In this document: piece by piece, positions 10,284-50,074 of the stretch | Numbering within the stretch: position 1 is the first letter of the stretch | Layout: the number at the start of each line of letters is the position of its first letter | NCBI GenBank assembly: GCA_964188305.1 | Contig: OZ076897.1 | Direction: 5' to 3' (one strand) | Length of the DNA: 64,000 nt | Source: Podarcis bocagei | Lineage: Eukaryota | Notes under the pieces: model-generated | What the model was told of the DNA's origin: nothing | The model's input: the letters and a program-made list of their open reading frames with translations, nothing else | Database searches by the model: none | Made by a program: the position numbers and the translations under genes

Positions 10284-11164
10284 TTCATTGTGTAGAATTT
10301 GTAAAAGTTTTTTTTAAAGTATCGTTTCCCCCCAGATATGCAACTACCTCAAAACTGGCTGAAATGCAGAGATTTTGCTTTCAAATATTGCTTAATGTGC
10401 CCTTTATATAGTAGATAAAATCCTGTGGTATTACATGGATATGGCTTATGATTAATTTGTACACTGTCTAATCTCCTTTAACAAACTTTGCAAACACATC
10501 TTATGTTAGTAAATCATTCCAGGCACTATAATCTATGTTACATCGCTGTTCCAGAGATGTGAAATACAGCCTTGCAAGAGGGGATTATTCTCTCTCCCCT
10601 TCTCTGATACATAGGAAGAATGGGTGTTAAATGCAATTTGTAAAGATATCTTTAACATTTTATTTGCCTTTTTAAAATATGTACGGTGGAAGGATCCCAG
10701 TTATTGAGATGAACAGGCATAAAGCTGGGAAATTAACTCATTACTCCCCTGCTTTGTTTCAGGAATTTTTCTGAAGCTAGGATTTGCTTTGAGGAAGAAA
10801 TTCTTCGTTGGTGCTGGCTGATGCATTTTTTAATATCTGAAATATAAAGGTGCATTTAATGTCACCTTGAGTTTGGCCTTCAGATATTTACTGAAGCATT
10901 TCTTAGCTGGTAAACTAGTCTGTACATAGTACAGTTCTCTCTTCATATGCTTTCTGGGGAAAACCTTCTTGCCCAGACGTCAGTGCTGCACTAATCAGGG
11001 GCAGGTGGACAACGCGAGAAGAGGCAGACCTATTCAAGAGAACAAAGAAATAGAAATTCCTCTTCAAAAGGAATTAACGTTTCTTTCGAACAGGGGTGAC
11101 AAACTTGTGTCCCACTTCTGTGACCTCCAATACCCTCACAAAATTTGACATCACTAAATTTAAT

Positions 11165-11199
11165 AATAAAAACGACTTGATAGTGTAAAATAATTTATT
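11165..11199. terminator. Candidate opposed poly(A) signals (YAE1 on +, MED1-like on -)
   Basis: AATAAA on + at 11165-11170; AATAAA on - at 11199-11194, between the two convergent stop codons. Confidence 0.4.
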
Positions 11200-12144
11200 G
11201 GAAAGCAGCCTCGAGAAGTGCAGTTCTTGCTACTCACGGGAAGGTTGACTATGGGTCAATGTGGCCCCCCGAAAGATTAGCCTCCTCTCTCCCAAATAAT
11301 GTGAGTTTTATGGGTCTTTTGCTGCCCTTACTTTGCTGTACTATAGCTACCACTACTTAAACTCTACCTGGTTCAGACCAAGAGAAGTCCTGTGTGTGAG
11401 ACACACACACACACAAACACAATCATGTAAAAATACTTACTTCACCTTACATGTAGAGCAAGGTGAACATATTGTCTGTGCAAGGGCAGATTTCAGGAGA
11501 GAGATTCATACCTCTATCCAGTAGAGACTGCACACAGAAGAGTATAATTATGGGAAAGGGCTGGGGTGCAAAAGTTTCATTGTAGTGTAAAGATGGTTCA
11601 TTTATCTTTTAATTTTAACTATGTCCCCAAGTATTCAAATCAATGCTACCTGGAAAAAATGTCCCTATGTGACTAACATTTGATGGAATCAAGACCCTAT
11701 TTTAAAAGATCACGTCTGGAAAAAAGGAAGCTTTAGTGTTAAGAAAAAAGCCCAATTTAGACAAAATTTCAGGTGGACTAGAGTTCTGCTACAGGGTGTG
11801 ACCAGTATAAAGATAAAAGTTGAATTAAAATAACCCACCCACCCCTGCCAAAAAATGTTTATCCTACTAAAAAAAAGTTCCTAAAGCTTTGTTTAACATA
11901 CTACTTCAGAAAACCTACTTTTTCTAAACATTCACTATAAAATAACCCTTACAAAGTTGAAACTTAATGTTTAATAAGGTGGTAATCTCTGCATTCAAAT
12001 TGCTTTTGTGACTTAAAACGTAACTTTTTCCAATGTTTTTCACTAAGCAGAATTAGTTTTGCCCAGTTGTAACTTGTGAGAGAAAGAAACCAAGTATTAT
12101 ACAAAAAATAATAATGCTGTTGCTCAGTTTCACAAGTAGCCACA

Positions 12145-12283
12145 TTACTGCTGGTTATGTTCAACTTGTTGGTCTTTGCAATTTTCCTCACAGACTCCGT
12201 CTTTGCTCAGAGAAGTTTCCTCAGCTTTTTGTTGGGTGGCTTTCTTGAAAATTGCTCTCATGAGAACCGGAATTGACATACAC
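12145..12283 (-). CDS. MED1-like terminal exon 17
   Basis: CMSIPVLMRAIFKKATQQKAEETSLSKDGVCEENCKDQQVEHNQQ* (TAA at 12147-12145). Confidence 0.9.
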
Positions 12284-14733
12284 CTAAGAGAAGGGCCAAG
12301 TCATCCAATATTTAAGGAACTGCTAATTCACTAAATATAATCTGGCTGCTCCATATGCAGAACTAACTGACTGGTGGATAGAGCAAGCTGCATTTGCCAC
12401 TGTCTCCAAAAAAGTCAGCGCAGTGCAGAAAGCTTTATAGATTACATAAAATAAATTTCTACAGTTCCATGCCAGTTCTTCTGTAAGGTGACATAAAGGT
12501 ACAGGTACCCCTGACGTTAAGTCCAGTTGCGAACATCTCAGGGGTTGCAGCGCTCATCTCTCTTTACTGGCCGAGGGAGCCAACGTTTGTCCGCTTCCAC
12601 AGACAGTTTTTCCGGGTCATGTGGAAATTATGACTAAACTGCTTCTGGCGAACCAGAGCAGCGCACAGAAACGCCGTTTACCTTCCTGCCGGAGTGGTAC
12701 CTATTTATCTACTTGCACTTTGATGTGCTTTCGAACTGCTAGGTTGGCAGGAACTGAGACTGAACAACGGGAGCTCACCCTGTTGTGGGGCCTCAAACCG
12801 CCGACATTCCAATCTTATTTTGCATTGCTCACTCAACAGGAGCAGTTTGAATCTTTAAAGTTGCATCCCACCACACTGCTGAAAATCCTCCTCATGCTTG
12901 ATGTTTCACAAGTATTTCCTATCCCTCCACCACCCATTTCTTTCATCAATCTTTCCTGATCCTTCTAACTAATAATAATCATTTTATTAGTTGTACCCTG
13001 CCCATCTGACAGGGTTGCCACAGCCACTCTGGGCAGCTTCCTGCTATAACAACATTGTTTTACTACCATTGTTGTTGTCGTCAACAACAACAACAACAAC
13101 AACTATCAGCCTTTTAATTTCCTTCAACACTTCAAGCTCTTTCCCGTCAGAGCAAGGGAGACCTTGCCCACTCCTGAACCTCTCTGTCTCCTGGCCACCT
13201 TTACTCTGCATGCAGAGTTGCTAGTGTTGCCGTTGCTCCAGCCAAAAGGCTATGGCAGGCAGTGATACTGAGGCCTACCTGAAAGTGGTCCAAAGACCAC
13301 TGCTGAGACTCAGCCCACTGGTGCAGAAACACTGGTCTAAGCTGCCCATTATCGAAGCAAAGGAGCCTCTATTTGCGCTAACTATTAAAAGATGGAGGAG
13401 ATTTTAGTTGCCATGAGTTCCAGAGAATGTCACACTGACATACAGGGCTCAACTAACTCTTCTGACCATCTGGAGCTAGACATTTATGGAGCTTGTAGGT
13501 AGGTTATTTTGGTTGCCTGTTTCTCACGTCTTAAGCCTGATGGAGTTATTCCACTGTGTTGTGCTTTCCTATGAAAGCTTACTCAGTATTATTAAGGTCC
13601 AGTTCCTCCAGCAAACTGTCTAAATGCATGCATCATTTGAGAATATCCTTTTTAAAAAAGCTGAATTGGCCCGTGAAACCCACCATTTTTAATAAATTCT
13701 TCATTACAATGTTTATATGGTATTGTTTCTCCTGCCCCAATGATTATTCAAATACTGAAAAAAAATTCCCGTTACATGAAATAATTTTTTTATCCTTTAA
13801 ATTACTTAAAAGTTTCTAGCTGCTGTACAAAGTTATTAAATTTATAGATAGCCACCCATCGGTTTACAAACCATTCCATTATACATGACACAAAAGGAAA
13901 GGGGATGGGAGGGACAGAAGAAAACTTGGCCCTTATATATTATAGAAGTGTTACCTACCGCTTCAGGACTCTTGTGAGATAATCATTGCTGCAGATTAAT
14001 GCTCCATCTTCAGAATGTGTATGAAGAGTGCATATAACGTCCCTTGAACTCAGAACATCGACCATCACTAAACAGAAGAGGGAAAAATGCTCTAAAAACA
14101 AGTGTGACATTATAGTAGAGACAACATTAAGAATTATCAACAACCACCAAATCTATTCAATCCTTAAATAGGAATTCTTTCTGATCACTGCATTGGTTTT
14201 ACTTATTTTCCTGAAAGCATGCATGCTTCGTGGGAAGAGGTCACATTCATGCTCATTCCATGCTGACTGTAAAAATGAGCAATTACAAATCGCTACAAGA
14301 TAAAAAATATATGTCACCAATAATTTCAAAAGGAGTCCATTCACACATCTACCTATGAGTAACAGGCATTTGAACTGGCTCCTGTTATCCCATCACCAGC
14401 CCAATCCAAAGATGTGCATCTTGAAAGGATTAACAAAACAGTAAACAGGCTGTTCACCTGTTGCAAGTTTATCCCAAGCCATCTTCAAAGCTGGTGTGGT
14501 TAAAGTTTAATCCATAGATTATGTGATAAAGTGCAACATCTGCTTACTTTTTAATATTCCCAACCATAGTATAAAACTGGGAATTCAGATCCAGTTTATA
14601 CCCAGGTTTCAAAATATGTATTTCCACCCTGGGACCATAGGGTGAAAGATGGACTGTAAATGACATAATGTGCTACTTTTTGTACCAATAGCCCCCAAAC
14701 CAATTTAACAGAGACAAACACTAGAAACGCGCG

Positions 14734-14768
<35 letters not shown>

Positions 14769-14930
14769 TGTGCAATAGTAGAAAAGAGTTAATATAGATG
14801 GCTAAGTAGTAAATGGGAAGAGTTTGCCAGTTTCTTCAATGTGTGCTAAAGTAAGAGCTCACTTGTGTATAACTATAACCATATTGTACATCACCATGAG
14901 ACACTTGTGTAGAAGACTAATAAATAATAA

Positions 14931-14985
<55 letters not shown>

Positions 14986-15129
14986 GCAGCCCTGCTTAGG
15001 GAAGCTTTTAATGTTTGACGGACTATTGTATTTTAATATTTTGTTGGAAGCCACCCAGAGTGGCCGGGGAAACCCAGCCAGATGGGCGTGGTATAAATAA
15101 TAAATAATAAATTATTGTTTGTTTGTTTG

Positions 15130-15176
<47 letters not shown>

Positions 15177-18100
15177 CACCTCTTTTCAGACCTTATTTAT
15201 GAATATGTGGCAATAGGTCACAGATGTGATCCAGCTCCTCCTCTCTAGTTCCTTGCCTCTGTGTGTTCAGACTGCATGGGGAGATGGGCAGGTTAGAGGA
15301 AGGCAGGAATTGATTAAGCAAAATTTGGGGTGTTGGTTCTAGCAGGGGACTATTGGGGCTCCACATGAGGCACAAAGTGTCTTAGGCCAGCGCTTTTCCT
15401 ATAAATATTTGAAAGCAGTCACAAGAGCCAGCTATTTAGGGCTTTGCACAGTGCTGCTCTGGGAAAAGGGAGGTAGCTTTGCAATGTGTGGTCAATGCTT
15501 TGTGTCAATGTGTGGTATGGACATCCAGTCTGTTCTTAACACTGAAACACACATATACACATTCACACGTTCTACCCCAGCCTGAGCCAAATGAGGCTAC
15601 ATGTGTAGTGCAAAATGCAGCGAGTGCATTTCTGCACCACGTTCCCTGCTGACTTTTTGTATGCCTGTGTGAACCCAATACACCTTTCCTTTGGAGACAT
15701 ACCACAGGCTAGGTTCTCCTCCAATGGATGCTGGAATGTTACTGAAAAACTAGTGGCTTTTTGCTGAAAGACGTCAAAATGAAGCAAGTCTGATGAATCT
15801 GGAAGGAAATAACTGTTTAGTGACTGTTTGGGCTAACCCTGTAGCAATAGAGCTAAACGTTTAATTTGAACTAGAGATATAAATTAGTGGGTGTAGTCAG
15901 AAAACATTTGTATTGATTTCCAAGTATTCTATATCCCTTAACTTAAAACATTACCATCGAAGTAGGAGTGGGTTGGTTTTTGCTGGACTCAAGGAGTCCT
16001 GCTTTGTACAAGCTCATGAAGTTTCATGGTACAAACATCAAATGAAATACAGTGGACTCTCGGGTTGTGAACATGGTCCGTGTGGGATGCATGTTCACAA
16101 CCTGCAGCAGCGCGTCTGCGTACACAAGGGTTGCGATTCAGTGCTTCTGTGCATGTGCAAAGCGCGATTTAGCGCTTCTGTGCATGCGCGACTGCTGAAA
16201 TCCGTTCCAGTACTTCCGTGTTTTGGCAGTCCATAACCTGAAAAAACGCAACCTGAAGCGTCAGTAACCCGAGGTATGACTGTACAGTTGCTGAAAATTT
16301 CCTTTTCCGTTTCACTATCTCCAAAAGAAATAAGTTATAAGGTGTCAACATTGTTGGTTGGAATCCAAACAGTCCCAAGCACACCTGAAAGCAAGTCCCC
16401 ATGAATACTTCACTCATTTTTAAATCTCTGCCTGCAGGAACTTTTGCTGAGAAGGGAGGGCCGTAGCTCAGTGGCAGAGCATTGAGTGCCTTGCACGAAG
16501 AAGATCCCACGTTCCACTCCTGCCATCTCCAGATCTGACTGTGAGAGAACCTCACCTGACACCCTGGAGAACTGATACCAGCTGATGTGGTGTAGTACTG
16601 AGCTATGTAAGAAAAGGGGGCAGGGGCCGAAAACAGAGTATATAGTTTCAAGATGGGAGTTGCAAATGAAACAAAGAAGAAGGGGGAGAACATTGCAGAA
16701 AATGCACATTCGATTTGCGTGATCTGTTCTACGCTATTCATATTGTTGCACCCCACCCTCAATCTCCAAGGTTTCAGGGATTCCAGGTGCTTACACAGGG
16801 TTTGTGATTTCTTTTGGGAATGAGGCACAATGGAGACTGTGGTCTCTTTATGATGTATGGTTTATCTACACGTATATACAAACTGAGCCTACAACATTAG
16901 TTTCTCCCACGGCAGCAGCCTTGGATTCAAACAGAAATCAAGTATTTCTCTTTGACCCTGTCTCCAGATTGCTGCTTTTCTTCCTGGTCACTTCACTGCT
17001 TCTCTCAACTCTGGCTTTATCTGTGAGAGGGGGCCCCACCCATTTGCCATCTTGCACCTTAATCCCCCTTAATGGCTCATTGCTCAGATTTATCACCTCA
17101 CGAGGAGGCTAGCCTGGCTATTCCTTGGTTAAATTCTAACACTTGCTAGATCTAAAGATTAGAGGGGTCTGGCACCCAGCTTAACCTCCACAGATATGAT
17201 GGGCTCACAATTTTCCTAGCCACTTTCAATGAATTGGATCACAAAAATGCTGAGAGGGGAGCAGAACCAGTATGCTGTCCATCACACCTCCTTATTTCGA
17301 ATGCCTGAATATCTTGTCACCACCATCCAAGGTGGACCTAACTTTACATGCATCCAACATACAAATCCCAATTGATATATTTGAGCTTCACAGCAAATAC
17401 TGAAGATAAACTCTTCCCAGAATTCACTGGTAGAAACACAGCAGAATCAGAAAGAGGTGTGAGCAAAAGATGTGCGAACATCTTACCTTCACACTCAGTT
17501 GTCTCAGACACACAGCTGCTAATGAGGGTGTTATATGCTGCTTGAAGTCTGAGAACTTCAATCATATCAGGCACACATTTGGGATGGGTGAAAGGGATTT
17601 TCTTGACCATTGCTCCAGCCAGATCAGATTTTTCTATGCCTTTATCTAGGAAATAGCTGTGTTTTGGGCAGCCTGGAAGAGACTGATCATAAACCATACA
17701 AGATTTGTTCATGGATGTAGTAGCAATTGTTTCCTGCATTGATTTTTTTAAAAAGTAGTGAATAGGAAACATGAATAAAAGGAACTTCCCTTCAAAAACA
17801 TACCCTATTTACTTGAGTCTAATGTACCATCAAATCTAATGCGCACCTCAATTTTCAGAACCCTGAAACCAAAAAAAGTATTTGCTGGCGAATGTAAATG
17901 TGCCATCGAATCTAATGCGTACCTTAATTTTCACAACAAAAAGGGTGAGCATTAGATTTGAGTAAATAAGATAGTTGTCTAGAACAGTACAAAGAATGTG
18001 ACACTGGACTTTTAAGCAAACCTTGAAATAAGCTGCTTATATTATAGATGCCTCGACCACCCATTTTTAAACAAGTTATTAAATAGAGTAGTCTCTGCAC

Positions 18101-21100
18101 TTGATCTGAAGAGTTGCTCAGCTCTCAAGCCCAATGGCACCGTGGGGAAAAACCAACCTGTCTGTGTATACATGGTAGTTTAAAGTGGATTTTATGCATT
18201 TTATGTGTGTTTGTTTTTCACCTTGTCCACACGACATTGTCCTCATCTAAGTAGAAGTCCACACTTCCCTCTGCCATTTAATTCAGAACTTCCCAATCCA
18301 TGTGATAAGGGGCGGAAATCCAATGTAAACTCAGATGTTACCCAGACACACTGAAGCACATTGTGAGGGCCACTTCTTATGTGACAACGTTTTGCTGGGT
18401 GTACTGCCACCTATTCCTGCACCCCTTACTTCCACTGGTGAGGTTTCCTTGGTGGGCTTTTATTGGGGCTGAGACAGAGACGCACTTTGGGGGGAGGGGG
18501 TGAACCCACAAGTGTGGTATACTGGAAAACTTGTATCTCAGTAATAATAAATATTGGCCACTCACACAGGTAAACAAATGATTGACATACCCACAGTGGA
18601 CTTCAGTTTTCCAGAACTCAAGGGGAGGGGTGGGAAAATACTAACTGAGAGGAGAGGACAGCGCATCCCATGAACACATCCCATAAACATCAAGACGGAG
18701 TTCAGCTGAAAGTGCCCATGTATGGATGAATGCACATGGACAGAAATGCACGTGGACAAATGGTGTCTGTGTGAGCCATGTGCACATTAAGCCTCTGGTT
18801 TGTATACCAGTAGTGCCAGTTTCCGCATAGTAGGATTTATCACACACAGCTGTTTCAAGGGCAACTTGTACCAAAAAGAACTGAATATAAACTAAAAGCA
18901 TGGCCAAGAAGATGTAAGAAATAAATATAATCCACCAACAGGATTCACTCCAGTTGGATCTTTCTACCAAGTTATTCCCCACAATGAATTCATTCTATGC
19001 TATCTTTATGAAACTTTCCCAGCTATTATGAGACCATGTGTGCAAATGGTTTTAACCTGAAACAAGACTTTTAAAAAAAGTTGTTATGGGTTAGTATAAG
19101 GCCACATTTAGTTTTTTAATGACATCTCATGGATGACAGCCCCACAATTTTGCACATTAGAGTCACTGAATTGAGTGTAATTTTGTGTGTGAGAGAGGGG
19201 GAGAGTAAGGAGAGAGAGAGAGAGAGAGCGCACACACAATTTGTGTATGTTGTGTAAAGGCCAACCTGGGCAAAGAATTGCAACTTAGGTCATAATCAAA
19301 TTTAGCAGTGTTAAAGTCATCTACTTCAGAAAATTCATGTGACTTCCCAGAATTCAACACACAGCTTTCAGTAAGCTGTAGAATTATGACTCATTTAGCA
19401 GCTTCATTCCTGACCTCATAACTGGAGTGAATACCAACAATTGGAGTATAATTACCACAATGAAGGAAGAAGTACTTGTTATCAAACCATGCGGATGATT
19501 TTCTGAAAGGGCAAACTGAACAATCAGCTCATGTAGAGGACCTGGCTTCAACCTAGCAACTGGAAGCCCTAAAACCAAATAATTTTTTTCCATTAGTACT
19601 GTACAAGAGCATCATTAAAGATGGAATGCATTTGAGAGAGACAGCATCACATGAGAAGAGGCAAAGAGAGATGTGATCACACAATGGTTATCAATAAATC
19701 AGTGGGATGGTTGCCAACAGAGGGACAGGGCTATTCAGATCAGCAAGCACTTGTGCTCCTGAATGGGCCAGTTGCTCCTGGGAAGGCTGAGACAAATACC
19801 AGCATGAATGCTATACTCCTAGTACAGAAGCAGCAATACTTGGTTCTCATTTTACGCTCCTGCCACTTCTCCCTTTCTAACTCCACCCTGGGGCCCCATC
19901 AGCCTTCATACCCCTGTAGGGGAAGAATTAACCAAATGTTAATTAGGGTCTATTGAAATGCTAGCATGTTAGGAGGGAGGGTGGAGGTACAAAATTATGT
20001 ACTTAATTAAATTAAAGCATGCCTGTAAGCTCCTGTAGTTTGTGAATACTGGATGAAGACAGAGGAAAAGGACAGTTCTGGTAAAACATCAGGAAAAAGC
20101 AAGCTGATAATGGTGCAGAAATTACTTCCTTCAGAGGCAGGAATCTGGGGCTGCTGAAGAAAAGGGTTCAAAGTTAAGCATCAGGTAAAAGGAAGCTAGT
20201 TTGACCAGTACTCTGGTAGCACAATCTTATAAGTTAAGCCAATGTTTCTCAAGCTTGCGTCCCCAAGTGTTGTTGGACTACAACGCCCATCATCCCTGAC
20301 CACTAGTCCTGCTAGCTAGGGATGATGGGCATTGTAGCCCAACAACACCTGGGTACCAAAGTCTGAGAAAGGCTGTTCTAGGATCTCAGACAGGATCTTC
20401 CTTTATCAGATCCGGAGGATCTGTGGCCCTCCAGATGTTGTTGGACTTCAACTCCCACCATCCCTGACCATTGACCAGGCTCACAGGGGCTGGTCAGAGC
20501 TGGAGACCACCAGCACTGCTCACAGTAGACAGCACCTTCAAAGGGAAACATCAGTTGGTGAGGAGAGGGGGCAGAATAAGAGTTCAGCCTGGCCTGAATC
20601 CAGATCAAAAGCACATACTGGGTCATGGATTGGCAGCAGCCTTTTCTTCAGACTGAAAATGGCCAGTTTAAGCATGTACTCTTAAGAAGTGTGAAGAACA
20701 CAATGTGTAATTTGAGGACGCACTTCCAGGTTTTGTACACATTTTCCTACCACGTTCCTCACAGTGTCTTAAAATGACAGACTATTAAGAAGTGAATTTG
20801 ATGTGCTATCACACACCCATTAGCGAGGGATTTCCATGTTCAGTTATACTGATAGGAGCATGAATGATGCCCTCAAGTCTTACCCATCTTCACCAGTCGG
20901 CGAATTCACAAGTGAGGGTGCAAGAGGGAGTCGGTGAACGGCATCAGCCCCTCCTATTATGACAAGCACCTTCCTACCGTCTATTTTCAAGCCTGATGGA
21001 AGGAGAAGACACAAATATGTCAGACTGTGAAGATGATACACAAATGGCCTTGAAGTCTTTGTCCAGGAACATTGATTTCCCCCAATACTTAAGTGAATTG

Positions 21101-23250
21101 TGATTCTAAGTTCTATAGCCGGTGATGTTATCCTGTCAGAGAACAGAAGGTTGCATGATGGATGCCTTGCTTGCCATTTGAACCCATTTTGTCTTTTGTT
21201 ATTTCAAAGCTAGTTCTGGACTAGTCTGAGGGAAGGCCCTGTGGCAGTATCTATTTAGGCCCCCTGGGAGTTTCCATGGTGACAGCTGTGGGTCTGGGAA
21301 GCCGGCAGCCATTTTAATAATAAAATGGCCGAGATTTTAAGTCCCCACAATGCCTTGGATGGATACTATGTGAACCAGTCCAGGGCACTGATGGGAAATT
21401 TAATATGGTGGTCCTCTTCCATTTGTTGTTGTCAGTAAAAACTAAAGTGGGGGAGCAGGTGGGCCAAGCTGGGGTGGTCAGCTCTGATGGACTCTGCTGA
21501 AATGCTAAGCACTGTCTTTAGTCCTCTGCCGTTATGACTGATGGTTATTGGGGGGTTTTGACCCAAGCAGATAGCAGGACAAATAAAGCAACAGGTCACC
21601 ACCAACTCTTAAACTTGTCCATCTTCTCACAAAATGACCACATCCAGACCAGTACACTTCATTTTTCTCCCTCATTGTTCCAGTATTTATCTTCACATTC
21701 ATGCATTGCAATATTAACACAGTTGTGTGCCATGTAAAAAGCATTACATAAGACAGTTTCTTTTTTAAAAAACCACACATCCCGGAATGGATATTAGAGA
21801 AATGGAAAACTGTAACGGGTTTTAGTGTTTATACTGTGTTGTAAGCCACTTTGAGTCACTTTTGTGAGTAAACTGACAAAATAATAATAAATACCTGGGG
21901 TGAGTTGTTCCTCTAGAATTTGATACTGCGATAGATAAAATTCAAGGTTCATAGGGCTTCCTATAGAATTTGAGAAAATTAGATGGATTAAACAGAAAAA
22001 GCACATAGCGGATAGCAATGTAAGCTATGTAAGCTTAGGATGTTTGATCCCCTTCATCATTTTTGTTTGCTTCCAATGCAAAGGACTCAATACCCCAGGG
22101 CCATATTGTGTGACAGGGGACCCAAACAACTGCTTGGGGTTGCAAGGAGATTGTTGTGGAGAGCTAGTTATCCACTAAACAGTTTAAACATATAAAACAA
22201 GTAAGTTCCTTTTTACAAATCACAGAATTGTAGCATTGGAATGGACCACTTGGGTCATCTAGCCCAACTCCCTATAGTGCAGGAATCTTTTTATCCAATG
22301 TGGAGCTCAAACTCACAGCCGCGAGATTAAGAATCGAATGCTCTACCAACTAAGCTATCACTCCTAGGGTGAAATTTCTTCCTGATAAATCATGCATACA
22401 ATTCATGCATAAATATTGAGGAGCAAGCTGCAGGACACCCTAAAATAAAGTACAGTGGTACCTCGTGTTAAGAACTTAATTTGTTCTGGAGGTCCGTTCT
22501 TAACCTGAAACTGTTATTAACCTGAGGTACCACTTTAGCTAATGGGGCCTCCCACCGCAGCCGCACGATTTCTGTTCTCATCCTGAAGCAAAGTTCTTAA
22601 CCTGAGGTACTATTTCTGGGTTAGCAGAGTCTGTAACCTGAAGCGTATGTAACCTGAAGCATCTGTAACCCGAGATACCACTGTATTCAAGAAGGTTGTA
22701 CAAATGGGGGAGGAGCCCCAAGAGATGCTCCAAAGTGCCATTTAGGGACAACTCTGCACACTGCACATGGTCAAGTAACTACCAAAGAAAAGAAGAATTA
22801 TAGGCAGAAGAAAAAGGCATTGGGGGAAGCAGTGGTCCAATGATCGGACACCCAGGAAATCACTAGCTGGTCTTGGTTTTAACCTTTAAGGCAGTTGTGC
22901 AGAAAGTGCACAGTTTGATCCTTTATGCTGATTGAAAGGTCGGCGGTTCGAATCCCCGTGGTGGGGTGTGCTCCCGTTGCTCGATCCCAGCGCTTGCCCA
23001 CCTAGCAGTTCGAAAGCACCCCCGGGTGCAAGTAGATAAATAGGGACCGCTTACTAGCGGGAAGGTAAACGGCGTTCCGTGTGCTGCGAAGGCTCGCCAG
23101 ATGCAGCTTGTCACGCTGGCCACGTGACCTGGAAGTGTCTGCGGACAGCGCTGGCTCCCGGCCTCTAGAGTGAGATGAGCGCACGCACAACCCTAGAGTC
23201 TGTCAAGACTGGCCCGTACGGACAGGGGTACCTTTACCTTAATACATAGA

Positions 23251-23294
<44 letters not shown>

Positions 23295-26200
23295 CCGCAA
23301 CAGGACTAGCACCTTATCAGGAAACGTAAGTCAAATGGGGGAGGGGAAGCAGCATTACTCATAAACAAGGAGAAGTGTATGTGAAAAGGGACCAAAACGC
23401 AAGAAGAAGAAGAGTTTGGATTTGATATCCCGCCTTTCACTCCCTTTAAGGAGTCTCAAAGCGGCTAACATTCTCCTTTCCCTTCCTCCCCCACAACAAA
23501 CACTCTGTGAGGTGAGTGGGGCTGAGAGACTTCAGAGAAGTGTGACTGGCCCAAGGTCACCCAGCAGCTGCAGGTGGAGGAGCGGAGACGCGAACCCAGT
23601 TCCCCAGATTACGAGACTACTGCTCTTAACCACTACACCACATTGGCTCTCCAAGGAGGAACTAGTCAGGACCTCTCCTCTATTTTCACAGCTACCTAGA
23701 AAAAGACTCGGGGACAAGAAAGGGGTTGTACACACTCATGTTGGACTCACCGTCATCTCTAGTCAAAAAGCGGTTTTGGAGCACAAAACTAGAAAAAGTG
23801 GTTTTGGAGCGGTTTTGTGAGCAGAAAGTATACTGGGATGAATGTGCTCACAGAACGCTTCAGGTAACGAGCTCCACTAACCCAGAAGTAGATGCTCCTG
23901 GTTGCGAACTTTGCCCTGGGATGTGAGTGAAAGTTGTGCACTGGTAGCGTGGCAGCAGCGGGAGGCGCCATTAGCGAAAGCGCGCCTTAGGTTATGAACA
24001 GTTTTGGGTTAAGAACGAACCTCCGGAACGAATTGAGTTCATAACCGGAGGTACCACTGTACTACAAACAACAATGCTTCTATCATACATGCTACCTACA
24101 AAGTCACCAGAAAGCAATCCCAAGGTATTACTATTCTTTAGCATTCTTAAATTATGCTTGGCTACCATGATCACACAGATATCTACTTCAGTCTGGAGAA
24201 AGAAAGAATAAACAGTTACCTCCACTTCTTGGGTTCAGATATCCAACTTTTCCACATAGTATTTCAGTGACTCTGTCCATACCTGGTGTTCTGTTTTTAA
24301 AGTATATACAGTAATCAGTAAGATCATGCACTTAAATGCCTTAAAATATTTTTTATTATTATGGCAACCTTAGGCTGGAGTGCAAACATTTGAACTTGCA
24401 CCTTCCCCAACCACTGTCAAACCTACCTGCTCAAAGCAGACAGTGAGCAGAGGTCTTTTTCCAAAGCCAGGAAGGCAGCAAACACCTTGGACTTTGTTTC
24501 ACTAGAAAAGAAAGACCTTATTGGAGGAAGGGGGTTTAACATACAATATAATAATTTAAGTAATTAAGTTGTAACAAACAAACCTGCTTCCTGGAATCTG
24601 ATAAATATTTAACATGTCTGCCACCATGTTTCCAAAGGCATCAAAATTTTCCATTCTAAAGAGCAAAATACATGCAACAATTGTCAGTGCTGATAAGGCA
24701 AATATTTGGGAAAACACCACCACCGAAGTGAATCTGATATTGGCAGCATGTTGACATAGAAAGCAGTGGGATGCTCTTACCATTGAGCTACCATCAAACA
24801 AGACATCTAAAAAGCAGTTAAATAACTTTGGAAAGTGGCTCAAATTGGTCCTGGTTGGAGGGCAGGCAGGGATGGAAGCAACAGTTATTAGAACTATCTA
24901 TTCATTTTTTACTTCAACCACAGAAAACGATATGGGAGCAGTGGCAAAGGATTTTTATTTTATGAAATTAAAAATTAAAAAATTATGTGTGCTAAAAATC
25001 CACCCAGCGCATATGTACCTCAGAAGCTGCAAAAGATCTTCACAGGTCTAGAAGACGAAAGAACAGAGGTTATGGTTTTCTAAAGAGGGGCACTATTTTC
25101 TTAAAAACAAAGCAGAAAGGAGAAATGACATAAGCCGAACCTTAGTCAACACGAAACTTTAGCAGACACTATGAGGAATATCCAAGGATGTTTTCCCCAG
25201 GATCTATTCAGGAACAGTCACTTTTGGTTGTAAACCAGAATCTATAAAGGCATATATTTCCTACTCTTCTCTCACCCATAGTTGGAGTGTGATTGCATCA
25301 TTTTGAAAGCCCTTGGGGTCCCTTCCAACTCCACAATTCTAGGATTCTATGTAACCTCCCCCCCCCCACCATGTGCTTCACTGCATCCACATATTGCATT
25401 TACTTCCTTTATTGGACTACCCCCCTCCAGACTAGGAAAATTCAAATTTAACGGGGGAAATTGTGGGCTAGCAGTTGGATGAGGACTTTATGTGAACGAG
25501 GAACAACCAGCTTCAAACCCGCATTAAGTTCCCCATGTGGACGAGCCCATATAGTTGCTACTTCATGTCAAGCAGTCTCATCAGATGGGGACAAATTAAG
25601 GAGGAATTGTCACCCAGCTATAAGGAATTTTAACAGTCTTTGTGCAATTATTTTGCAGTTCAGCATTTGCTATTCCCACAAATTTTGCATTTGCAAATGC
25701 AGATGTTTAGTTTGGTTGTAGCAGCAACAGAATAAGTGTTATAACTAATGTAAAGTTGTCCCTTTGACTTGTTTGTTGTTGTTTAGTCATTTAGTCGTGT
25801 CCGCCTCTTCGTGACCCCATGGACCAGAGCACGCCAGGCACTCCTGTTTTCCACTGCCTCCTGCAGTTTGGTCAAACTCATGCTGGTAGCTTCGAGAACA
25901 CTGTCCAACCATCTTGTCCTCTGTCGTCCCCTTCTCCTTGTGCCCTCCATCTTTCCCAACATCAGGGTCTTTTCCAGGGAGTCTTCTCTTCTCATGAGGT
26001 GGCCAAAGTATTGGAGCCTCAGCTTTAGGATCTGTCCTTCCAGTGAGCACTCAGGGTCGATTTCCTTAAGAATTTGATCTTCTTGTAGTCCATGGGACTC
26101 TCAAGAGTCTCCTCCAGCACCATAATTCAAAAGCATCAATTCTTCGGCGATCAGCCTTCTTTATAGTACAGTTCTCACTTCCATACATCACTACTGGGAA

Positions 26201-27001
26201 AACCATAGCTTTAACTATACGGACCTTTGTTGGCAAGGTGATGTCTCTACTTTTTAAGATGCTGTCTAGGTTTGTCATTGCTTTTCTCCCAAGAAGCAGG
26301 TGTCTTTTAATTTCGTGGCTGCTGTCACCATCTGCAGTGATCATGGAGTCCAAGAAAGTAAAATCTCTCACTGCCTCCATTTCTTCCCCTTCTATTTGCC
26401 AGGAGGTGATGGGACCAGTGGCCATGATCTTCGTTTTTTTGATGTTGAGCTTCAGACCATATTTTGCGCTCTCCTCTTTCACCCTCAATAAAAGGTCCCT
26501 TTGACTTACATGCAAGCATCCCACTTGCTCCACAGGGTTTATTATGAAGCTATAGATATTTTAGAAGAACAAGAAAAGCAGGATTATATTTCATCAGATC
26601 AGAACACCCAAAGGAAAAATAAAATAAAATTACCAGGGGTTTTTTCCCAGGGTGAGCCAACCTGACATCCACCACTTTTCCATCCGTCTCCAGGTGAATC
26701 TCAATGTAGAAGGATTTGGATGTTATATAGCAAACTGCCCCACTGGGGCTCACATAATAATTAAGTCTACAGAGGAAAGAAGGAAGAAGAAAAAATGCAT
26801 TGCTTATTTAAAAGTTACAGTGTGCAATGGAAGCCTAGCAGGGCTGGCCCAAGACATTTTGGCACCTCAAGTGAACCACAAAATGGTGTCCCCCCTCTCC
26901 ACCAGGAAGGAAGGGTGAGTGAAGATCTACGTCAGGAACAAAGTGATGAGGACTAAAGATCGGCAGAGTGGCTGGGGAAACCCAGCCAGATGGGCCGGAA
27001 A

Positions 27002-27056
<55 letters not shown>

Positions 27057-30000
27057 ATATTTTATTATTATCTGCTGCTGCTGCCCCTGTGGATCCTGCC
27101 ACATGAGGCAGGATGCCTCACTTCATGGATGGGCTGACCCCGAATGCAAACTTTTTTCTTTATCTTGGTTGATGTATACGGGTTCTACAGAAAGGAGTGT
27201 TTGCACCCAGCTTTCCAAACGGCTGTGTTTCAGTTCCTGATTAAACGTCAGCAGCAGCAGGTCTGTACATCAGTGGAAGACCACATGCTTTGGACTGAAC
27301 CCCCCACCCCACCCCACCCCAGGTTCAGCCTCCAACATCTCCAGGGCTGGGAAAGGCAGATGATGCAAGGCGACACAGAGATCAAAATACTAATAGCTGG
27401 ATTTGGCATAAAGCGGCTTCCTACTCCTGCATTTTCTGAAATGCCACTTTGTAGTGGCATTTATCTACGCTTTGTCAAGAGGCTGAGGTGAAGTAGTAAT
27501 CATTTCACAGGCCCCAGTATAGGCAATGTCCCAAAACTTTCCACCCGAGGGGAACTCCTGACCTGCTCATGCTCATCTCTTTCAAGGATATCGCAGGAAA
27601 AGGGCAGTAAGCCGCAGCTTAGAGGATGCATTAGCCACTGAATATACCGAATGGCATGTACGCATGTCATGTGAAAATTATGCAGCCGTAGAAACATACC
27701 TAGCAGTCCCACTGCTGCGGGAAGTGAAGAGAGCGTGTTTAGTAGATGCATAGTATACTTACCCCTTTCGATTTGACAAGAGTGACAGCTTGTTCATTGT
27801 TGCAGCCAAAGGTCCTGCTGCACACATGAAAAAATAGGGAATAAGGTTCCATCACACAGAATCAACGTGTTCAGTAAAAGCAGTCAACAGATCCCATAAG
27901 TTTAAGAGCAAAAGACCAAAGATTCTTGCTTAATTGCGCTATATTGCTCATCGTACCTTTTGTAAAAGGAAGGCATCTAGGGCCCAGACACATTCGTTGC
28001 ACAAGATGACAAGACAGAAGCTAGACATTGTTTCCATCAAACATAACAGAAAATCAGGCAATCTTAGAGTTGATTACCGTGCAAGGTTCTTTGTATTTTC
28101 TCAAGGCAAATAGATATGGGAGACTCTGATGCCTTACTTGAAGTCCAAGAATGTTTGTCCTCATCAAGAGAGAGAGAGAGATACATATACATATATTTGT
28201 ATCATATAATCTTTACATGCAAGTCAGAAAATTGGCTGGTATGTTCAAAGCAATATAGGGAATTCAGCACTCTCAGTCAGGCCTCTTATATCTTGACCTT
28301 CATTGCCCTCTTTGGGGTGCCAGATCAAAATGCTGCAGCGGCAATGGAAGCTACAACTGGCAGAAGACACCCCCCCACCAGGCTTTATAACAGACCAAGT
28401 AACCCCACATCCCAGTATCAGCTGGGGGTGGATTGGAAAAAATATAAAATCAAACGGGGGAAATTTGCCTATTCAATTTTTCAATCCATAAGGGATTGAT
28501 TAGCTTTGTAATTACAAAGCATTACAACACTGCCATTTTTATTTTCCATTCTCACCATGGAATTTGCATCACTCTCCCAAGACCACACACAAACTATCCA
28601 TTTAATTGAATTTAGTTTCTTCCTCGATAATCACAATCAATCAGTATTTTGGGGAAGTTAAGAATCCCCTCCATTATTCCCACCTAGAGCCATCTTGCCA
28701 AATTTCCCCCTTCAGAGTTATCCATCCAAGATCAAGAGTGGAGATGACAGGGCAGTAAAATAACCACCTCACATGTTAAACTTTGGCCCGTCAGGCAGAA
28801 AATAAGATGGAAAACATATACACACGTTGACTCACTTTCCCTTCTACTTTCAATTATTCTCCTCAAGAAAGCATTTTTTTTATAAAAAAAAGTTTCTCCC
28901 ACATTACTCCTCCCCAACAGAACTGATTTCATTACAATTCTTACCATGGAGAGACGAACCAGCTCCATAGTTTCACTCCATGGCTTCTGTGAGAATTTTA
29001 GACGTAGCTTTTCCATTATGTCATTTGTAGACCCAGATTTCGCAGGATCTGGAAGAAGTTAAGAGTTTAATTAGCTGAGAGTGCAGGAAACCTTTTTTCA
29101 GTTCAAGGGCCACAGTTCCTTGCTTGAAGCCTCCTGGGGGCCATGGGCCAGAAGCAAAAGAGGGTGGAGGAAGAAATGGGAGTAGCTGGTGTCTTCACCT
29201 TCCCTAGATCCCTCTTTATCTTCCAGGGAAGCCGGAAGCTTTCTCAGAGTTGAAGGAAGCTTTCCACCCAGCAAAACCCTCCAATGGGCTGACAAAAGGT
29301 GTAGTTTGGGAGGCTGTATGGCTTAGGGAAATTTGAGGGCCAGATGAGAGGCTCGAGGTCCACATTTGGTCCCTGGGCTCAAGGTTCCCCACCCCTGATA
29401 TAGCAAAACAGCCAACTATTATATGACTTAAACGAACAGCCCATACTGCAACAATAGTCACTTTAAATTAGGACTATTTAGTCCCAGATGGGTGAGGTAT
29501 TTCAGATTAACCGACTCATGAACTTGGCTACAATATAGGTACTAATATTAATGGACCTGTGTTTGGCTTAATTCCCACTCTTCCACCTGTTGAATCTCAT
29601 AATCTGAAACCTACAGCTATTTTAAAAGTTCAGTTTTATATCTTNNNNNNNNNNNNNNNNNNNNNNNNNNNNNNNNNNNNNNNNNNNNNNNNNNNNNNNN
29701 NNNNNNNNNNNNNNNNNNNNNNNNNNNNNNNNNNNNNNNNNNNNNNNNNNNNNNNNNNNNNNNNNNNNNNNNNNNNNNNNNNNNNNNNNNNNNNNNNNNN
29801 NNNNNNNNNNNNNNNNNNNNGTACAGGAATGTAGGTTTTGGTGTCTTCGGGTGTCTTCCCGTGTAAGAGTTGGGGTGTCTAGGCGACGTTTCGACGAGGT
29901 CTCACTCGTCATCTTCAGGCTGGTGCTTTCGGCTTCTTGTTACTAGAACAGAGCAGGATCTCAGTGTTTGAGTTCCTATAAATACTGTTGAGGGGGTGTG

Positions 30001-31759
30001 GTGTATAGCCTCCAACGTTCTGGGCAGAGAGGAAGTTCCCAGGTTAGTGTGCCTTTTCTTCTTTTGTTCATTAATTACTTGAGGGATATCTTGAGTGATT
30101 ACTTGAGTGATATTCTGAGTACCACTTAGGAGGGTCATTAGGTGTGAATTAGTTGCTAAAGCTTTCGTGTCTTGACCTCTTGACCTTGTAAAGAGTTTTT
30201 CTGAGAAGATGGCTGTACTGCAATTAGTTGTGCTCTGGCTTGGCTTCGTGTATAGGGGCGAGCTGTGGTTTTGTGCCCTGTGCCAGCCAGATCTGTGTAG
30301 GGATTGCAGGGGGGTGCAGCAACCAACTTCCCTTCCTTGACGTCCTAATCTACAAAAAACCTGATGGCTCCCTAGGACACACTATCTACCGGAAAAAAAC
30401 ACACACCAACCGCTACTTACATGCACAATCACACCACCACCCTGCACAAATAAACTCCGTAGCCAAGACTCTCATCTCCAGAACCAAACGCCTGGCTGAC
30501 AAAGACCACTTGACAACTGAGTTACAGAATCTCTCAAATGTGTTAATCGCCAACGGATACCAGCAAAACAGGGTTACGAAGCTAATCCAAAAAGAAACAC
30601 CCCCCAAAAACCAAGACACAGAAGAAAACAATGGCATGGCCCTCCTTCCTTATATCAAGGGCACTACAGATAAAATTAGCAAAATCCTCCATAAACACAA
30701 TATCAAAACAGCCTTTTGCACCAACCAAAAAATAGCCAATATCCTCAGAAACCCAAAAGATAAAATCCAGTTAGAAAACCAAGGGGTCTATGAAATACCC
30801 TGCAAAGTCTGCCCAGCCACGTACATTGGACAAACAAACAGACGAATAAATGCACGTATCGCAGAACACAAGAATGCCGTCAAAAAAGAAGAAAAAACTT
30901 CCTCTCTTTACCAACACATGAAAGAAACAGGACACGAAATTAATTTTGCAGATTCCAAATTGCTCTTTAACATGGAACATCACCACAAGAGAATAATCAT
31001 GGAAGCCATCGAGATAGAGAAACACCCTCACAACATGAACAAGCGTGACGACACGTCCCGCCTGCCAGACATCTGGAAATTAGCCCTCCCCACAAAAACC
31101 GACACCAGAACCAGAGGCACACAGAACGCCATCTCCAATCAACCACACCAGACCCAAACCCAGACCCTCTCCACAGATAAATTACAGACACCATTTCAAC
31201 TAATTCACACCTAATGACCCTCCTAAGTGGTACTCAGAATATCACTCAAGTAATCACTCAAGATATCCCTCAAGTAATTAATGGTTCACTTGAGGTGCCA
31301 AAATGTCTTGGGCCAGCCCTGCTAGGCTTCCATTGCACACTGTAACTTTTAAATAAGCAATGCATTTTTTCTTCTTCCTTCTTTCCTCTGTAGACTTAAT
31401 TATTATGTGAGCCCCAGTGGGGCAGTTTGCTATATAACATCCAAATCCTTCTGCAATAGGAGTAATGGGATGGAGTCCTCAACCTCACCCAAGGGCAGCA
31501 GGGTCATTATGGAGGTAAAGGACAGGTCTTGGGGCAGACATAAATCTATCTTACCAGAGCCAGGGACCTCAGGGGCAAACAACCAGCAGCTTCTACAGCC
31601 GGAGACGGTAGCCTTGTTCAACCTATAACATCCTCTCTGTGGTGACAATACAGCATAGTGGTGTAATCCAGCCACACCTTCCACATTAGCACCTGCCTGG
31701 AAACCCAGACCCTAAGTGGCTGCAAATACAACAGCCCAATTAGCAACTTACTTACCCAT
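12145..31759 (-). CDS. Mediator subunit 1-like paralog (Med1 domain only), about 527 aa, 17 coding exons
   Basis: complement(join(12145..12283,13959..14067,15703..15798,17487..17682,19456..19568,20023..20153,20884..20992,21895..21960,24220..24290,24427..24501,24584..24655,25019..25047,26634..26766,27763..27817,28078..28159,28945..29048,31756..31759)) = 1584 nt with no internal stops. Collinear with MED1 residues ~1-530: KPWSETMELVR~RPWSETIKLVR, CYITSKSFYIEI~CYITSDMFYVEV, VGYLNPRSGG~VGYLTPRSGG, QAAYNTLISSCV~QVAYNTLIGSCV, FSVTFQHP~FSVSFQHP, RCMSIPVLMRAI~RCMSIPVTMRAI. Confidence 0.92.
12496..12810 (-). mobile_element. Sauria SINE
   Basis: aaaggtac..cccctgac...gccgtttaccttcc..gtacctatttatctacttgcac.. 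hallmark sequence. Confidence 0.85.
13959..14067 (-). CDS. MED1-like exon 16
   Basis: VMVDVLSSRDVICTLHTHSEDGALICSNDYLTRVLKR ~ DALICTDDFIAKVVQR. Confidence 0.93.
14727..14767. repeat. (CG)n(CA)n microsatellite
   Basis: Read directly. Confidence 0.9.
14920..15176. repeat. (AAT)n + L2-type 3' tail + (TTA)n
   Basis: gccacccagagtggccggggaaacccagccagatgggcg.ggtataaat tail; related copies near 6490-6550, 12985-13040 and 26965-27060. Confidence 0.7.
15703..15798 (-). CDS. MED1-like exon 15
   Basis: DSSDLLHFDVFQQKATSFSVTFQHPLEENLAC. Confidence 0.93.
16050..16282. mobile_element. Tc1/mariner MITE (subfamily of 2781-3027)
   Basis: TA|CAGTGG...GAGGTATGACTG|TA. Confidence 0.75.
16454..16610 (+). mobile_element. 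tRNA-derived SINE
   Basis: A box gtagctcagtggcagagc and a degenerate B box; similar heads near 37000-37085(-) and 55938-56070. Confidence 0.6.
17487..17682 (-). CDS. MED1-like exon 14
   Basis: SLPGCPKHSYFLDK...FTHPKCVPDMIEVLRLQAAYNTLISSCVSETTECE. Confidence 0.94.
17802..17971. mobile_element. pogo/Tigger-like MITE
   Basis: Imperfect TIR cc.tatttact.ga.tctaatg / cattagatttgagtaaata; TA flanks. Confidence 0.55.
19456..19568 (-). CDS. MED1-like exon 13
   Basis: GLPVARLKPGPLHELIVQFALSENHPHGLITSTSSFIV ~ APLYELITQFELS. Confidence 0.9.
20023..20153 (-). CDS. MED1-like exon 12
   Basis: SPRFLPLKEVISAPLSACFFLMFYQNCPFPLSSSSIHKLQELT ~ LPACFFLKFPQPIPVSRAFVQKLQNCT; donor is GC (AG|gcatgc). Confidence 0.85.
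20884..20992 (-). CDS. MED1-like exon 11
   Basis: GLKIDGRKVLVIIGGADAVHRLPLAPSLVNSPTGEDG ~ VTIEGTSAVYKLPIAPLI. Confidence 0.88.
21895..21960 (-). CDS. MED1-like exon 10
   Basis: GSPMNLEFYLSQYQILEEQLTP ~ HLMNLKYYVSPSDLLD. Confidence 0.88.
22222..22360 (-). mobile_element. tRNA-head SINE with CR1-type tail (also 38305-38420, 62690-62793)
   Basis: Reverse complement reads gatagct.agttggt.agagc..., then cagggggttggactagatg CR1-like 3' end. Confidence 0.6.
22453..22683. mobile_element. Tc1/mariner MITE
   Basis: CAGTGGTACCTC TIRs, TA flanks. Confidence 0.85.
22930..23240 (+). mobile_element. Sauria SINE
   Basis: aaggtcggcggttcgaatccc... ending ggggtacctttacctt. Confidence 0.88.
23252..23293. repeat. 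(CA)n microsatellite
   Basis: Read directly. Confidence 0.95.
23403..23650 (-). mobile_element. CORE/MIR-like SINE with L2-type tail
   Basis: gtgactggcccaaggtcacccagc core; tRNA head reads gtggtgtagtggttaagagc in reverse complement. Confidence 0.75.
23855..24059. mobile_element. Tc1/mariner MITE (partial)
   Basis: Ends gaggtaccactg|ta. Confidence 0.75.
24220..24290 (-). CDS. MED1-like exon 9
   Basis: TPGMDRVTEILCGKVGYLNPRSGG. Confidence 0.92.
24427..24501 (-). CDS. MED1-like exon 8
   Basis: SETKSKVFAAFLALEKDLCSLSALSR ~ KLKTKMYLALQSLEQDL. Confidence 0.9.
24584..24655 (-). CDS. MED1-like exon 7
   Basis: MENFDAFGNMVADMLNIYQIPGS ~ EKNFDEFSKHLKGLVNLYNLPGD. Confidence 0.9.
25019..25047 (-). 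CDS. MED1-like exon 6 (29 nt)
   Basis: TCEDLLQLLR ~ SCPELVQQLR; ttctag| and |gtacat. Confidence 0.85.
25773..26500 (-). mobile_element. BovB (RTE) LINE 3' fragment in MED1-like intron 5
   Basis: VKEESAKYGLKLNIKKTKIMATGPITSWQIEGE..., MRREDSLEKTLMLGKMEGTRRRGRQRTRWLD; (CAA)n tail. Confidence 0.95.
26634..26766 (-). CDS. MED1-like exon 5
   Basis: LNYYVSPSGAVCYITSKSFYIEIHLETDGKVVDVRLAHPGKKPL. Confidence 0.93.
27763..27817 (-). CDS. MED1-like exon 4
   Basis: AGPLAATMNKLSLLSNRKG; NAGNAG acceptor, donor gtaagt. Confidence 0.82.
28078..28159 (-). CDS. MED1-like exon 3
   Basis: DKHSWTSSKASESPISICLEKIQRTLH; acceptor is GAG, donor gtaatc. Confidence 0.8.
28945..29048 (-). CDS. MED1-like exon 2
   Basis: DPAKSGSTNDIMEKLRLKFSQKPWSETMELVRLSM; ttccag| and |gtaaga. 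Confidence 0.9.
29821..31283 (+). mobile_element. Penelope-like element: inverted 3' segment (29821-30320) followed by 5'-truncated RT-thumb/GIY-YIG ORF (30321-31214)
   Basis: QLPFLDVLI..IYRKKTHTNRYLHAQSHH; GVYEIPCKVCPATYIGQT..RIAEH; MEAIEI..MNKRD. Confidence 0.93.
29877..29926 (-). ncRNA. Minimal hammerhead-ribozyme-like motif in the Penelope pLTR
   Basis: Reverse complement reads CUGAAGA-u-GACGAG(ugagac)CUCGUC-GAAAC-GUC. Confidence 0.6.
31282..31452 (+). repeat. 171-bp perfect inverted duplicate of 26708-26878 (MED1-like intron 4/exon 5 junction)
   Basis: Base-for-base reverse complement. Confidence 0.95.
31756..31759 (-). CDS. MED1-like putative start exon (ATG G)
   Basis: gagaaATGG|gtaagt strong donor; phase 1 matches the next exon, giving M-D-P-A-K. 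Confidence 0.55.
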
Positions 31760-44713: not shown

Positions 44714-44788
44714 CTTTCGTAGATTTTCACGGGTACAGGAATGCAGGTTTTGGTGTCTTCGGGTGTCTTCCCGTGTAAGAGTTGGGGT

Positions 44789-44838
44789 GTCTAGGCGACG
44801 TTTCGACGAGGTCTCACTCGTCATCTTCAGGCTGGTGC
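44789..44838 (-). ncRNA. Hammerhead-like motif (Penelope)
   Basis: Same core as 45711-45760. Confidence 0.6.
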
Positions 44839-45710
44839 TTTCGGCTTCTTGTTACTAGAACAGAGCAGGATCTCAGTGTTTAAGTTCCTATAAATACTGT
44901 TGAGGGGGTGTGGTGTATAGCCTCCAACGTTCTGGGCAGAGAGGAAGTTCCCAGGTTAATGTGCCTTTTCTTCTTTTGTTCATTAATTACTTGAGGGATA
45001 TCTTGAGTGATTACTTGAGTGATATTCTGAGTACCACTTAGGAGGGTCATTAGGTGTGGATTAGTTGCTAAAGCTTTCGTGTATTGACCTCTTGAGCTTG
45101 TGAATAGTTTTTCTGAGAAGATGGCTGTACTGCACTTAGTTGTGCTCTGGCTTGGCTTCGTGTATAGGGGCGAGCTGTGGTTTTGTGCCCTGTGCCAGCC
45201 TTGTGCGGCTTTTTTTTTTTGTGCCCTGTGCCAGCCTTGTTTTTGTGCCAGCCTTTTTTTGTGCCCTGTGCCAGGCTTTTTTTGTGCCCTGTGCCAGCCT
45301 TGTGCAGCCTTGTGCGGCTGCACCCCCCTGCAATCCCTACACAGATCTGGCTGGCACAGGGCACAAAACCACAGCTCGCCCCTATACACGAAGCCAAGCC
45401 AGAGCACAACTAAGTGCAGTACAGCCATCTTCTCAGAAAAACTATTCACAAGCTCAAGAGGTCAATACACGAAAGCTTTAGCAACTAATCCACACCTAAT
45501 GACCCTCCTAAGTGGTACTCAGAATATCACTCAAGTAATCACTCAAGATATCCCTCAAGTAATTAATGAACAAAAGAAGAAAAGGCACATTAACCTGGGA
45601 ACTTCCTCTCTGCCCAGAACGTTGGAGGCTATACACCACACCCCCTCAACAGTATTTATAGGAACTTAAACACTGAGATCCTGCTCTGTTCTAGTAACAA
45701 GAAGCCGAAA

Positions 45711-45760
45711 GCACCAGCCTGAAGATGACGAGTGAGACCTCGTCGAAACGTCGCCTAGAC
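45711..45760 (+). ncRNA. Hammerhead-like motif (Penelope)
   Basis: CTGAAGA 45719-45725; stem II GACGAG/CTCGTC; GAAAC 45745-45749; GTC 45750-45752. Confidence 0.6.
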
Positions 45761-45803
45761 ACCCCAACTCTTACACGGGAAGACACCCGAAGACACCAAA
45801 ACC

Positions 45804-45838
<35 letters not shown>

Positions 45839-49506: not shown

Positions 49507-50074
49507 TGTGATGGCCTGGGAATCCGATTCAGAGGCTGAACCGGAGGAATCCCAGCCTGAACAGGAGTCCCCGCCTCCAGGGCCGGCTGAACTGGGGCAG
49601 GGCCTTGATTCTGAAGCGCCTGAACCTGTGCCGGATCCTCAGGAGCAGGCACCAGGTGAATCTACTCTGGCTCCGGAGGTGGTTGAGGACTCAACACCTA
49701 CAGGTGAGTCTCCCCCTGGGTCCAATAACCCTTCAGCCTCTCCTGAACTGCAGAGGCTCAGGGCAGAGAGGCGAAGGGAACTGGTTTCTCCCAGGAGGAG
49801 TGCTCGCCTTAAGGCCAGGAGAGGCGGGTCTCCTGGGGGCCGGGACTGCCCCTGGCCTCAGAGAAGATAAAGGCCAGTCAGCCTGGTCCCAGGTTGCGGG
49901 AGCAACGTCGTTGAAGAGCTGTTTCGGCCAGCACCCAGTCCTGTTCCTCGAGAGTTCCTGTCCTTGCCCGGCTCCTTGCTGTGGACCCCGCTTCGCCTGT
50001 GGAGGACTGTCTGCTGACCCTTGACTTAGGTCCTGGACATCGCCCCACGGTAACCTCCTCCCTGGACCAGCACA
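49507..50074 (+). repeat. 5' LTR of the Gypsy element
   Basis: TG...CA with 7/8-nt terminal inverted repeat; TATA-like GATAAA at 49866. Confidence 0.8.

Follow-up and report, generated by a model that had tools for sequence, protein, structure and literature searches.

A stretch of 64,000 nucleotides from the lizard Podarcis bocagei (contig OZ076897.1, assembly GCA_964188305.1; the whole stretch is called the window here) carries on its minus strand, from 31759 to 12145, a gene resembling the front part of MED1, the Mediator subunit. The question raised by this locus is whether the gene is MED1 itself, a relic of it, or a second, working copy. Our analysis indicated that it is very probably the lacertid orthologue of gnathostome MED1-like, a MED1 duplicate that predates the split between sharks and bony vertebrates, is intact and maintained, and has kept only the ordered N-terminal domain of MED1. 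The gene itself is already known: many vertebrate genomes have it annotated as MED1-like. As a discovery it carries little weight, having also been noted in print in 2008.

The exon model was rebuilt independently of an earlier reading of this DNA (the sequence-only reading), using related proteins as guides and inspecting each junction by eye. The rebuild gave the same figures as before: 17 in-phase minus-strand coding exons between the outer coordinates 31759 and 12145, adding up to 1584 nt (527 codons plus TAA) with no internal stop. All 16 acceptors were AG, and 15 of the 16 donors were GT. Intron 12 is a GC-AG intron with its donor at 20022-20021. Lacerta agilis has the identical donor, GCATGCTT, and this intron may be one reason why lacertid gene models are fragmented. 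The last exon (exon 17, 12145-12283) was found, as claimed earlier, to open in the manner of MED1 (CMSIPVxMRAI) and to end after 45 residues. It begins with (R)CMSIPVLMRAIF, followed by a 33-residue acidic tail and the TAA at 12145-12147. As predicted from these exons, the 527-aa product is the whole ordered MED1 N-terminal domain with a short acidic tail.

The product was compared with the Med1 family at the level of single exons. Exon 5 (26634-26766) and exon 14 (17487-17682), each taken alone, scored 32.8 and 39.7 bits against the Pfam Med1 profile (PF10744), for which the cut-off is 25 bits, so both exons passed the profile test that the sequence-only reading had suggested. MED1-like orthologues carry PF10744 too. 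Open segments of the minus strand from 12.1 to 29.1 kb encoded peptides collinear with MED1, and the exon 14 segment matched MED1 residues 363-449 in the human and mouse Mediator chains of the PDB (E 2e-9). The 527-aa protein aligned with canonical MED1, including that of Crotalus, Anolis, and Varanus, over residues 12-508 at 37-40% identity, and the similarity was kept, in collinear order, in every exon.

The fold was tested on the MED1-like orthologue of Hemicordylus, which stood in for the window protein (65% identical). The AlphaFold2 model of its residues 1-530 (pLDDT 78, pTM 0.74) matched the MED1 chain of human Mediator (7emf_A) with TM scores of 0.72/0.81 and an E value of 1e-43, at 36% identity over about 500 columns. 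By this model, the Hemicordylus orthologue is predicted to have the ordered MED1 N-terminal domain fold seen in solved Mediator; 7EMF is a Mediator structure solved with the disordered region of MED1 deleted. Zhao et al. (2021; PMC7921410) positioned strands at about residues 437-481 of MED1 against MED24. Exons 15 (15703-15798) and 16 (13959-14067) together align to a run of hydrophobic beta-strands in canonical MED1, which may include these strands, and keep its hydrophobic pattern.

An exhaustive profile search with exon 14 returned proteins of 400-970 aa at 58-73% identity, whereas canonical long MED1 proteins scored lower, at about 40-54%. The NCBI name of these relatives is "mediator of RNA polymerase II transcription subunit 1-like". 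Among sauropsids they are annotated in very many birds, in turtles, and in lizards (Hemicordylus, Paroedura, Heteronotia, and Lerista), and among other vertebrates in salamanders, frogs, coelacanth, gar, eels, osteoglossomorphs, bichir, and elephant shark; in lacertids, the annotated entries are fragments only (Podarcis lilfordi and Lacerta agilis). The window protein was 98% identical to the P. lilfordi fragments, 65% identical end to end to Hemicordylus MED1-like, and 52-55% identical to turtle and bird MED1-like. By comparison, the canonical MED1 N-terminal domains of snake, rodent, and shark shared 78-80% identity with one another. "Large and small forms" of Med1 in frogs and fish were reported by Bourbon in 2008 (PMC2475620). 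The gene is thus no peculiarity of this lizard, as the sequence-only reading would have it, since annotated copies of it range from elephant shark to birds and it has been in print since 2008. No functional study was found in literature searches on vertebrate MED1-like or MED1L and on MED1 ohnologs. No mammalian MED1-like protein surfaced in the searches for relatives, which were not designed to prove absence.

A maximum-likelihood tree was built from 37 N-terminal domains. Two clades emerged, one of short forms (98/97) and one of long forms (99/98). The window protein was excluded from the long clade and fell within the short clade, nested among squamates (100/100), together with the proteins that NCBI lists as MED1-like (Hemicordylus capensis isoform X3, 618 aa; P. 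lilfordi CAI5788090/91; L. agilis XP_033021989), which represent the same gene. Each clade tracked the species tree through elephant shark, ray-finned fish, amphibians, and sauropsids. Because both clades follow the species tree from elephant shark upwards, the duplication predates the gnathostome crown. Lamprey fell outside both clades, without strong support (91/85), and amphioxus, hemichordates, and protostomes lay further out. Short and long genes occur in the same genome in Columba, Mauremys, Melanerpes, Phasianus, Callorhinchus, Pleurodeles, and Nanorana; among squamates, Crotalus, Anolis, and Varanus have canonical MED1.

The gene neighbourhood was also investigated. YAE1 (8435-10283, plus strand; Yae1_N exon at about 8450-8570, last exon at 9888-10283) converges on MED1-like in the window, the two genes standing tail to tail with their stop codons about 1.86 kb apart. 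YAE1 is likewise the convergent neighbour of the short gene in L. agilis, in the woodpecker Melanerpes, and in the elephant shark Callorhinchus. The canonical MED1 of Crotalus lies head to head with a large Pkinase gene 3 kb upstream, which we take to be CDK12 from its arginine/serine-rich first exon. No kinase motif was detected in the window, and the locus does not have the arrangement of MED1 next to a CDK12-type kinase gene; a motif scan of the whole 64 kb also detected no exon of a RALA-type GTPase or of a CDK13-type kinase. In human, YAE1, RALA, and CDK13 lie together on 7p14, and MED1 and CDK12 on 17q12. This map would fit MED1 and MED1-like being a pair from whole-genome duplication. 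The earlier proposal, which saw in the gene an old paralogue distinct from the orthologue of MED1, is borne out both by the tree and by a neighbour that is YAE1 and not a CDK12-type kinase.

Selection on the gene was analyzed by comparison with the L. agilis locus, which covers exons 5-17 (445 codons compared). L. agilis MED1-like (XP_033021989) has the same exon structure and the same YAE1 neighbour as the window gene. Exon lengths were identical throughout, no splice site had been lost (the GC donor was shared too), and the reading frame ended at the same codon (TAG in L. agilis, TAA in the window). The data showed a dN of 0.022 and a dS of 0.105, and the dN/dS ratio of 0.21 (bootstrap 0.12-0.39) was significantly below neutrality (P = 5e-8). 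Flanking and intron blocks aligned to L. agilis were mostly 83-95% identical, which is consistent with this dS. Purifying selection, together with 1584 nt free of stops and frameshifts, upholds the description of the gene as intact. The dN/dS ratio was 0.15 in exons 5-12 (P = 6e-6 against neutrality) and 0.29 in exons 13-17 (P = 0.005). The annotated products of P. lilfordi and L. agilis are C-terminal and of 168-239 aa, and a full-length lacertid protein, which would be expected near the top rank, was absent from the database searched. However, exons 5-12, which are missing from these products, showed stronger coding constraint than exons 13-17. The full 17-exon, 527-aa model is supported by the constraint on these unannotated exons. 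The window gene supports a complete frame, in contrast to the C-terminal fragments that the database lists for lacertids.

We also compared the C-terminal end of the protein with those of canonical MED1 and the other short forms. In canonical MED1 of shark, turtle, snake, and rodent, the receptor boxes LTSLL and LMNLL stand about 100 and 145 residues past the CMSIPV motif; no short form examined had either box at the corresponding position. The only LxxLL in the 527-aa protein is LLQLL (residues 131-135), encoded by the 29-nt mini-exon 6 (25019-25047; TCEDLLQLL) and located within the folded domain, as had been proposed, and the stop comes 45 codons into the last exon; the earlier statement that the protein has neither nuclear-receptor boxes nor a long disordered region was confirmed. 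The LXXLL motifs of canonical MED1 are located outside its folded part (PMC7921410). Tails of short forms after the CMS motif are acidic and serine-rich and vary from 37 to 242 aa across species, and the window protein conforms to this type of ending, with a short acidic tail soon after the CMSxPxxMRAI motif. The word tailless, used in the earlier description, holds in a relative sense only: at 45 aa counted from the CMS motif, lacertids have one of the shortest tails, whereas those of other sauropsids measure 79-143 aa, and the 972-aa MED1-like protein of the gecko Heteronotia binoei has a tail of 478 aa with about 20 tandem 19-residue repeats. This expansion indicates that a MED1-like tail can regrow a long low-complexity region. 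A search downstream of the stop with squamate, turtle, and bird tails recovered only the part that is already in frame. No long minus-strand open frame was present within 12 kb downstream, the longest being 272 aa and lying in a CpG island.

These results leave little room for the view that the gene is the true orthologue of MED1, cut short by a misassembly or a misreading. This view has nothing in its favour beyond the shared family, and it is refuted by the tree, the YAE1 synteny, the shared stop in L. agilis, and the separate canonical MED1 of other squamates; we regard it as hardly credible at all. A decaying duplicate that is open by chance would account for the single GC donor, the transposon and inverted exon fragment in intron 1, the CpG-poor promoter, and the partial database models. 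However, such a pseudogene is largely refuted, and very improbable, given an uninterrupted reading frame, a GC donor conserved in L. agilis, a dN/dS significantly below 1, and retention of the gene from shark to birds. The lacertid locus might instead yield mainly the N-terminally truncated products, with the 527-aa frame rarely or never translated, as all entries for P. lilfordi and L. agilis are short and the database searched lacks a full-length lacertid protein. We think this quite unlikely, because exons 5-12 keep frame, splice sites, and constraint in two lacertid genera, and other lizards have full-length models.

It is also conceivable, but unlikely, that a functional gene left Mediator and that the short protein serves another role, for example with partners that the MED1 N-terminal domain has off the complex. 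The branches of the short clade, about 5-10 times longer than the canonical ones, speak for such a departure, as does an identity to canonical MED1 of only 37-40%, against 78-80% among the canonical domains. In contrast, the similarity is collinear in every exon, the predicted fold matches MED1 within Mediator, and the hydrophobic pattern is kept where the protein aligns to the probable MED24-side strands. Some points nevertheless weigh against the reading of the gene as an intact, maintained MED1-like orthologue. Mediator-contact surfaces may be altered in the short clade, because it evolves several times faster than canonical MED1; the main lacertid transcripts may be N-terminally truncated, given that only C-terminal products are annotated; and exon 1 is unproven, being only 4 nt long and on the other side of an assembly gap.

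The window gene has much in common with known forms of MED1. Canonical MED1 (TRAP220, about 1500-1840 aa) has 17 coding exons, and it shares with the window gene the Pfam Med1 domain and a collinear N-terminal domain up to the CMSIPVxMRAI opening of the last exon. Unlike canonical MED1, the window protein has no LTSLL or LMNLL and no disordered region of about 1000 aa, and its gene lies by YAE1 instead of a kinase gene and evolves much faster. Nearly the same extent of MED1 is found in the engineered MED1(1-530) and in the MED1 of 7EMF, from which the disordered region was deleted. These truncations assemble into Mediator and support some functions that are independent of the receptor boxes (PMC8091968; 7EMF), whereas the window gene is natural and separately evolving. 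MED1(1-530), without the receptor boxes, supports some MED1 functions (PMC8091968). A second short Med1 beside a long one also occurs in Caenorhabditis elegans (MDT-1.2 or 'Med1L', a small form; PMC2475620, PMC4344494); it belongs to a different animal lineage from the vertebrate short form, and it probably arose by an independent duplication.

We infer that the MED1-like product would occupy the MED1 position on Mediator. Such a Mediator could be recruited neither by nuclear receptors that bind LxxLL motifs nor by way of the disordered region of MED1. Without recruitment by receptor boxes or disordered region, MED1-like would act as an alternative to, or a competitor of, canonical MED1. The region around exon 1 was CpG-depleted (observed/expected 0.05-0.18), which gives a hint of restricted expression, and no CpG island was detected near exon 1; expression is probably driven by a CpG-poor, tissue-restricted promoter. 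We tentatively propose, as an idea somewhat likelier to fail than to hold, that nature has in MED1-like a MED1 stripped of receptor boxes and disordered region, which takes the single MED1 slot of Mediator in particular tissues of non-mammalian vertebrates and makes the complex blind to LxxLL-dependent recruitment by nuclear receptors and poor at forming condensates, and that this switch was lost in mammals. The gene represents an unstudied natural experiment, in which most jawed vertebrates have selectively kept a copy, about 450 million years old, of the Mediator-docking half of MED1. If MED1-like enters Mediator, tissues of chicken, Xenopus, and lizard would provide a physiological test of what the receptor boxes and the disordered region contribute.

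The remaining exons, all on the minus strand, were placed as follows. Exon 2 (28945-29048) encodes residues 2-36 and holds an alternative in-frame ATG (Met13), exon 3 occupies 28078-28159, and exon 4 (27763-27817) has a tandem CAGCAG acceptor. The coding exons compared with L. agilis continue with exon 7 (24584-24655), exon 8 (24427-24501), exon 9 (24220-24290), exon 10 (21895-21960), exon 11 (20884-20992), exon 12 (20023-20153), which precedes the GC donor, and exon 13 (19456-19568). An exon 6/7-like peptide in the first 80 nt of intron 5 was rejected, having no acceptor; the true exon 6 is the mini-exon at 25019-25047.

The start of the gene was examined in relation to the assembly gap (N at 29645-29820), which falls within intron 1 (31755-29049), so that no codon spans it. 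Residues 2-527 are independent of the gap because exons 2-17 are all on one side. The putative exon 1 (31756-31759, minus strand) consists of ATG plus G followed by the donor GTAAGT; it is the sole exon beyond the gap and depends on the scaffold join. No other candidate of the form ATG..G|GTAAGT occurred within 5 kb upstream of exon 2, and the start context is good, with A at -3 and G at +4. The N-terminus that it predicts is MDPAK, and the Hemicordylus orthologue starts with MDPVK, the first three residues being common to both. A P. lilfordi product starting with MGLPV corresponds to ATGG joined in frame to exon 13, with exons 2-12 skipped. Exon 1 is regarded as putative, with Met13 in exon 2 as the fallback start.

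Around the minus-strand gene, polyadenylation signals of both strands are interleaved between YAE1 and MED1-like (10284-12144). Antisense overlap of the two transcripts is possible, and the gene calls overlap at the woodpecker locus. A CpG island at 1-2000 (GC 0.60-0.72, observed/expected 0.62-0.80), upstream of YAE1, is presumably the YAE1 promoter. At 49500-52700 there is a GC-rich block with long open reading frames that, judged by eye, resemble the gag-pol of a long terminal repeat (LTR) retrotransposon, with zinc-knuckle, protease-like, and reverse-transcriptase-like peptides; this block is the source of the CpG-rich signal at 51-53 kb.

Intron 1 has also received insertions. On its right the gap is flanked by a repeated Penelope-like sequence (29821-30320), of which two further copies, 98% identical, occur at 44.7-45.8 kb. 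A Penelope-like insertion (30069-31283, plus strand) adjoins it, so the gap is a repeat problem within the intron. The insertion carries a 328-aa open reading frame between perfect inverted terminal repeats of 87 nt, and this frame gave a weak GIY-YIG match of 20.5 bits, below the cut-off. Two more partial copies of the element, inverted, lie at 44733-45808. Abutting the end of the insertion, within the same intron, is an inverted 174-nt copy of the intron 4/exon 5 junction (31282-31455, plus strand; 99% identical to 26705-26878). If this copy is real and not an assembly artefact, it would form a long perfect hairpin within one pre-mRNA, with arms 4.4 kb apart.

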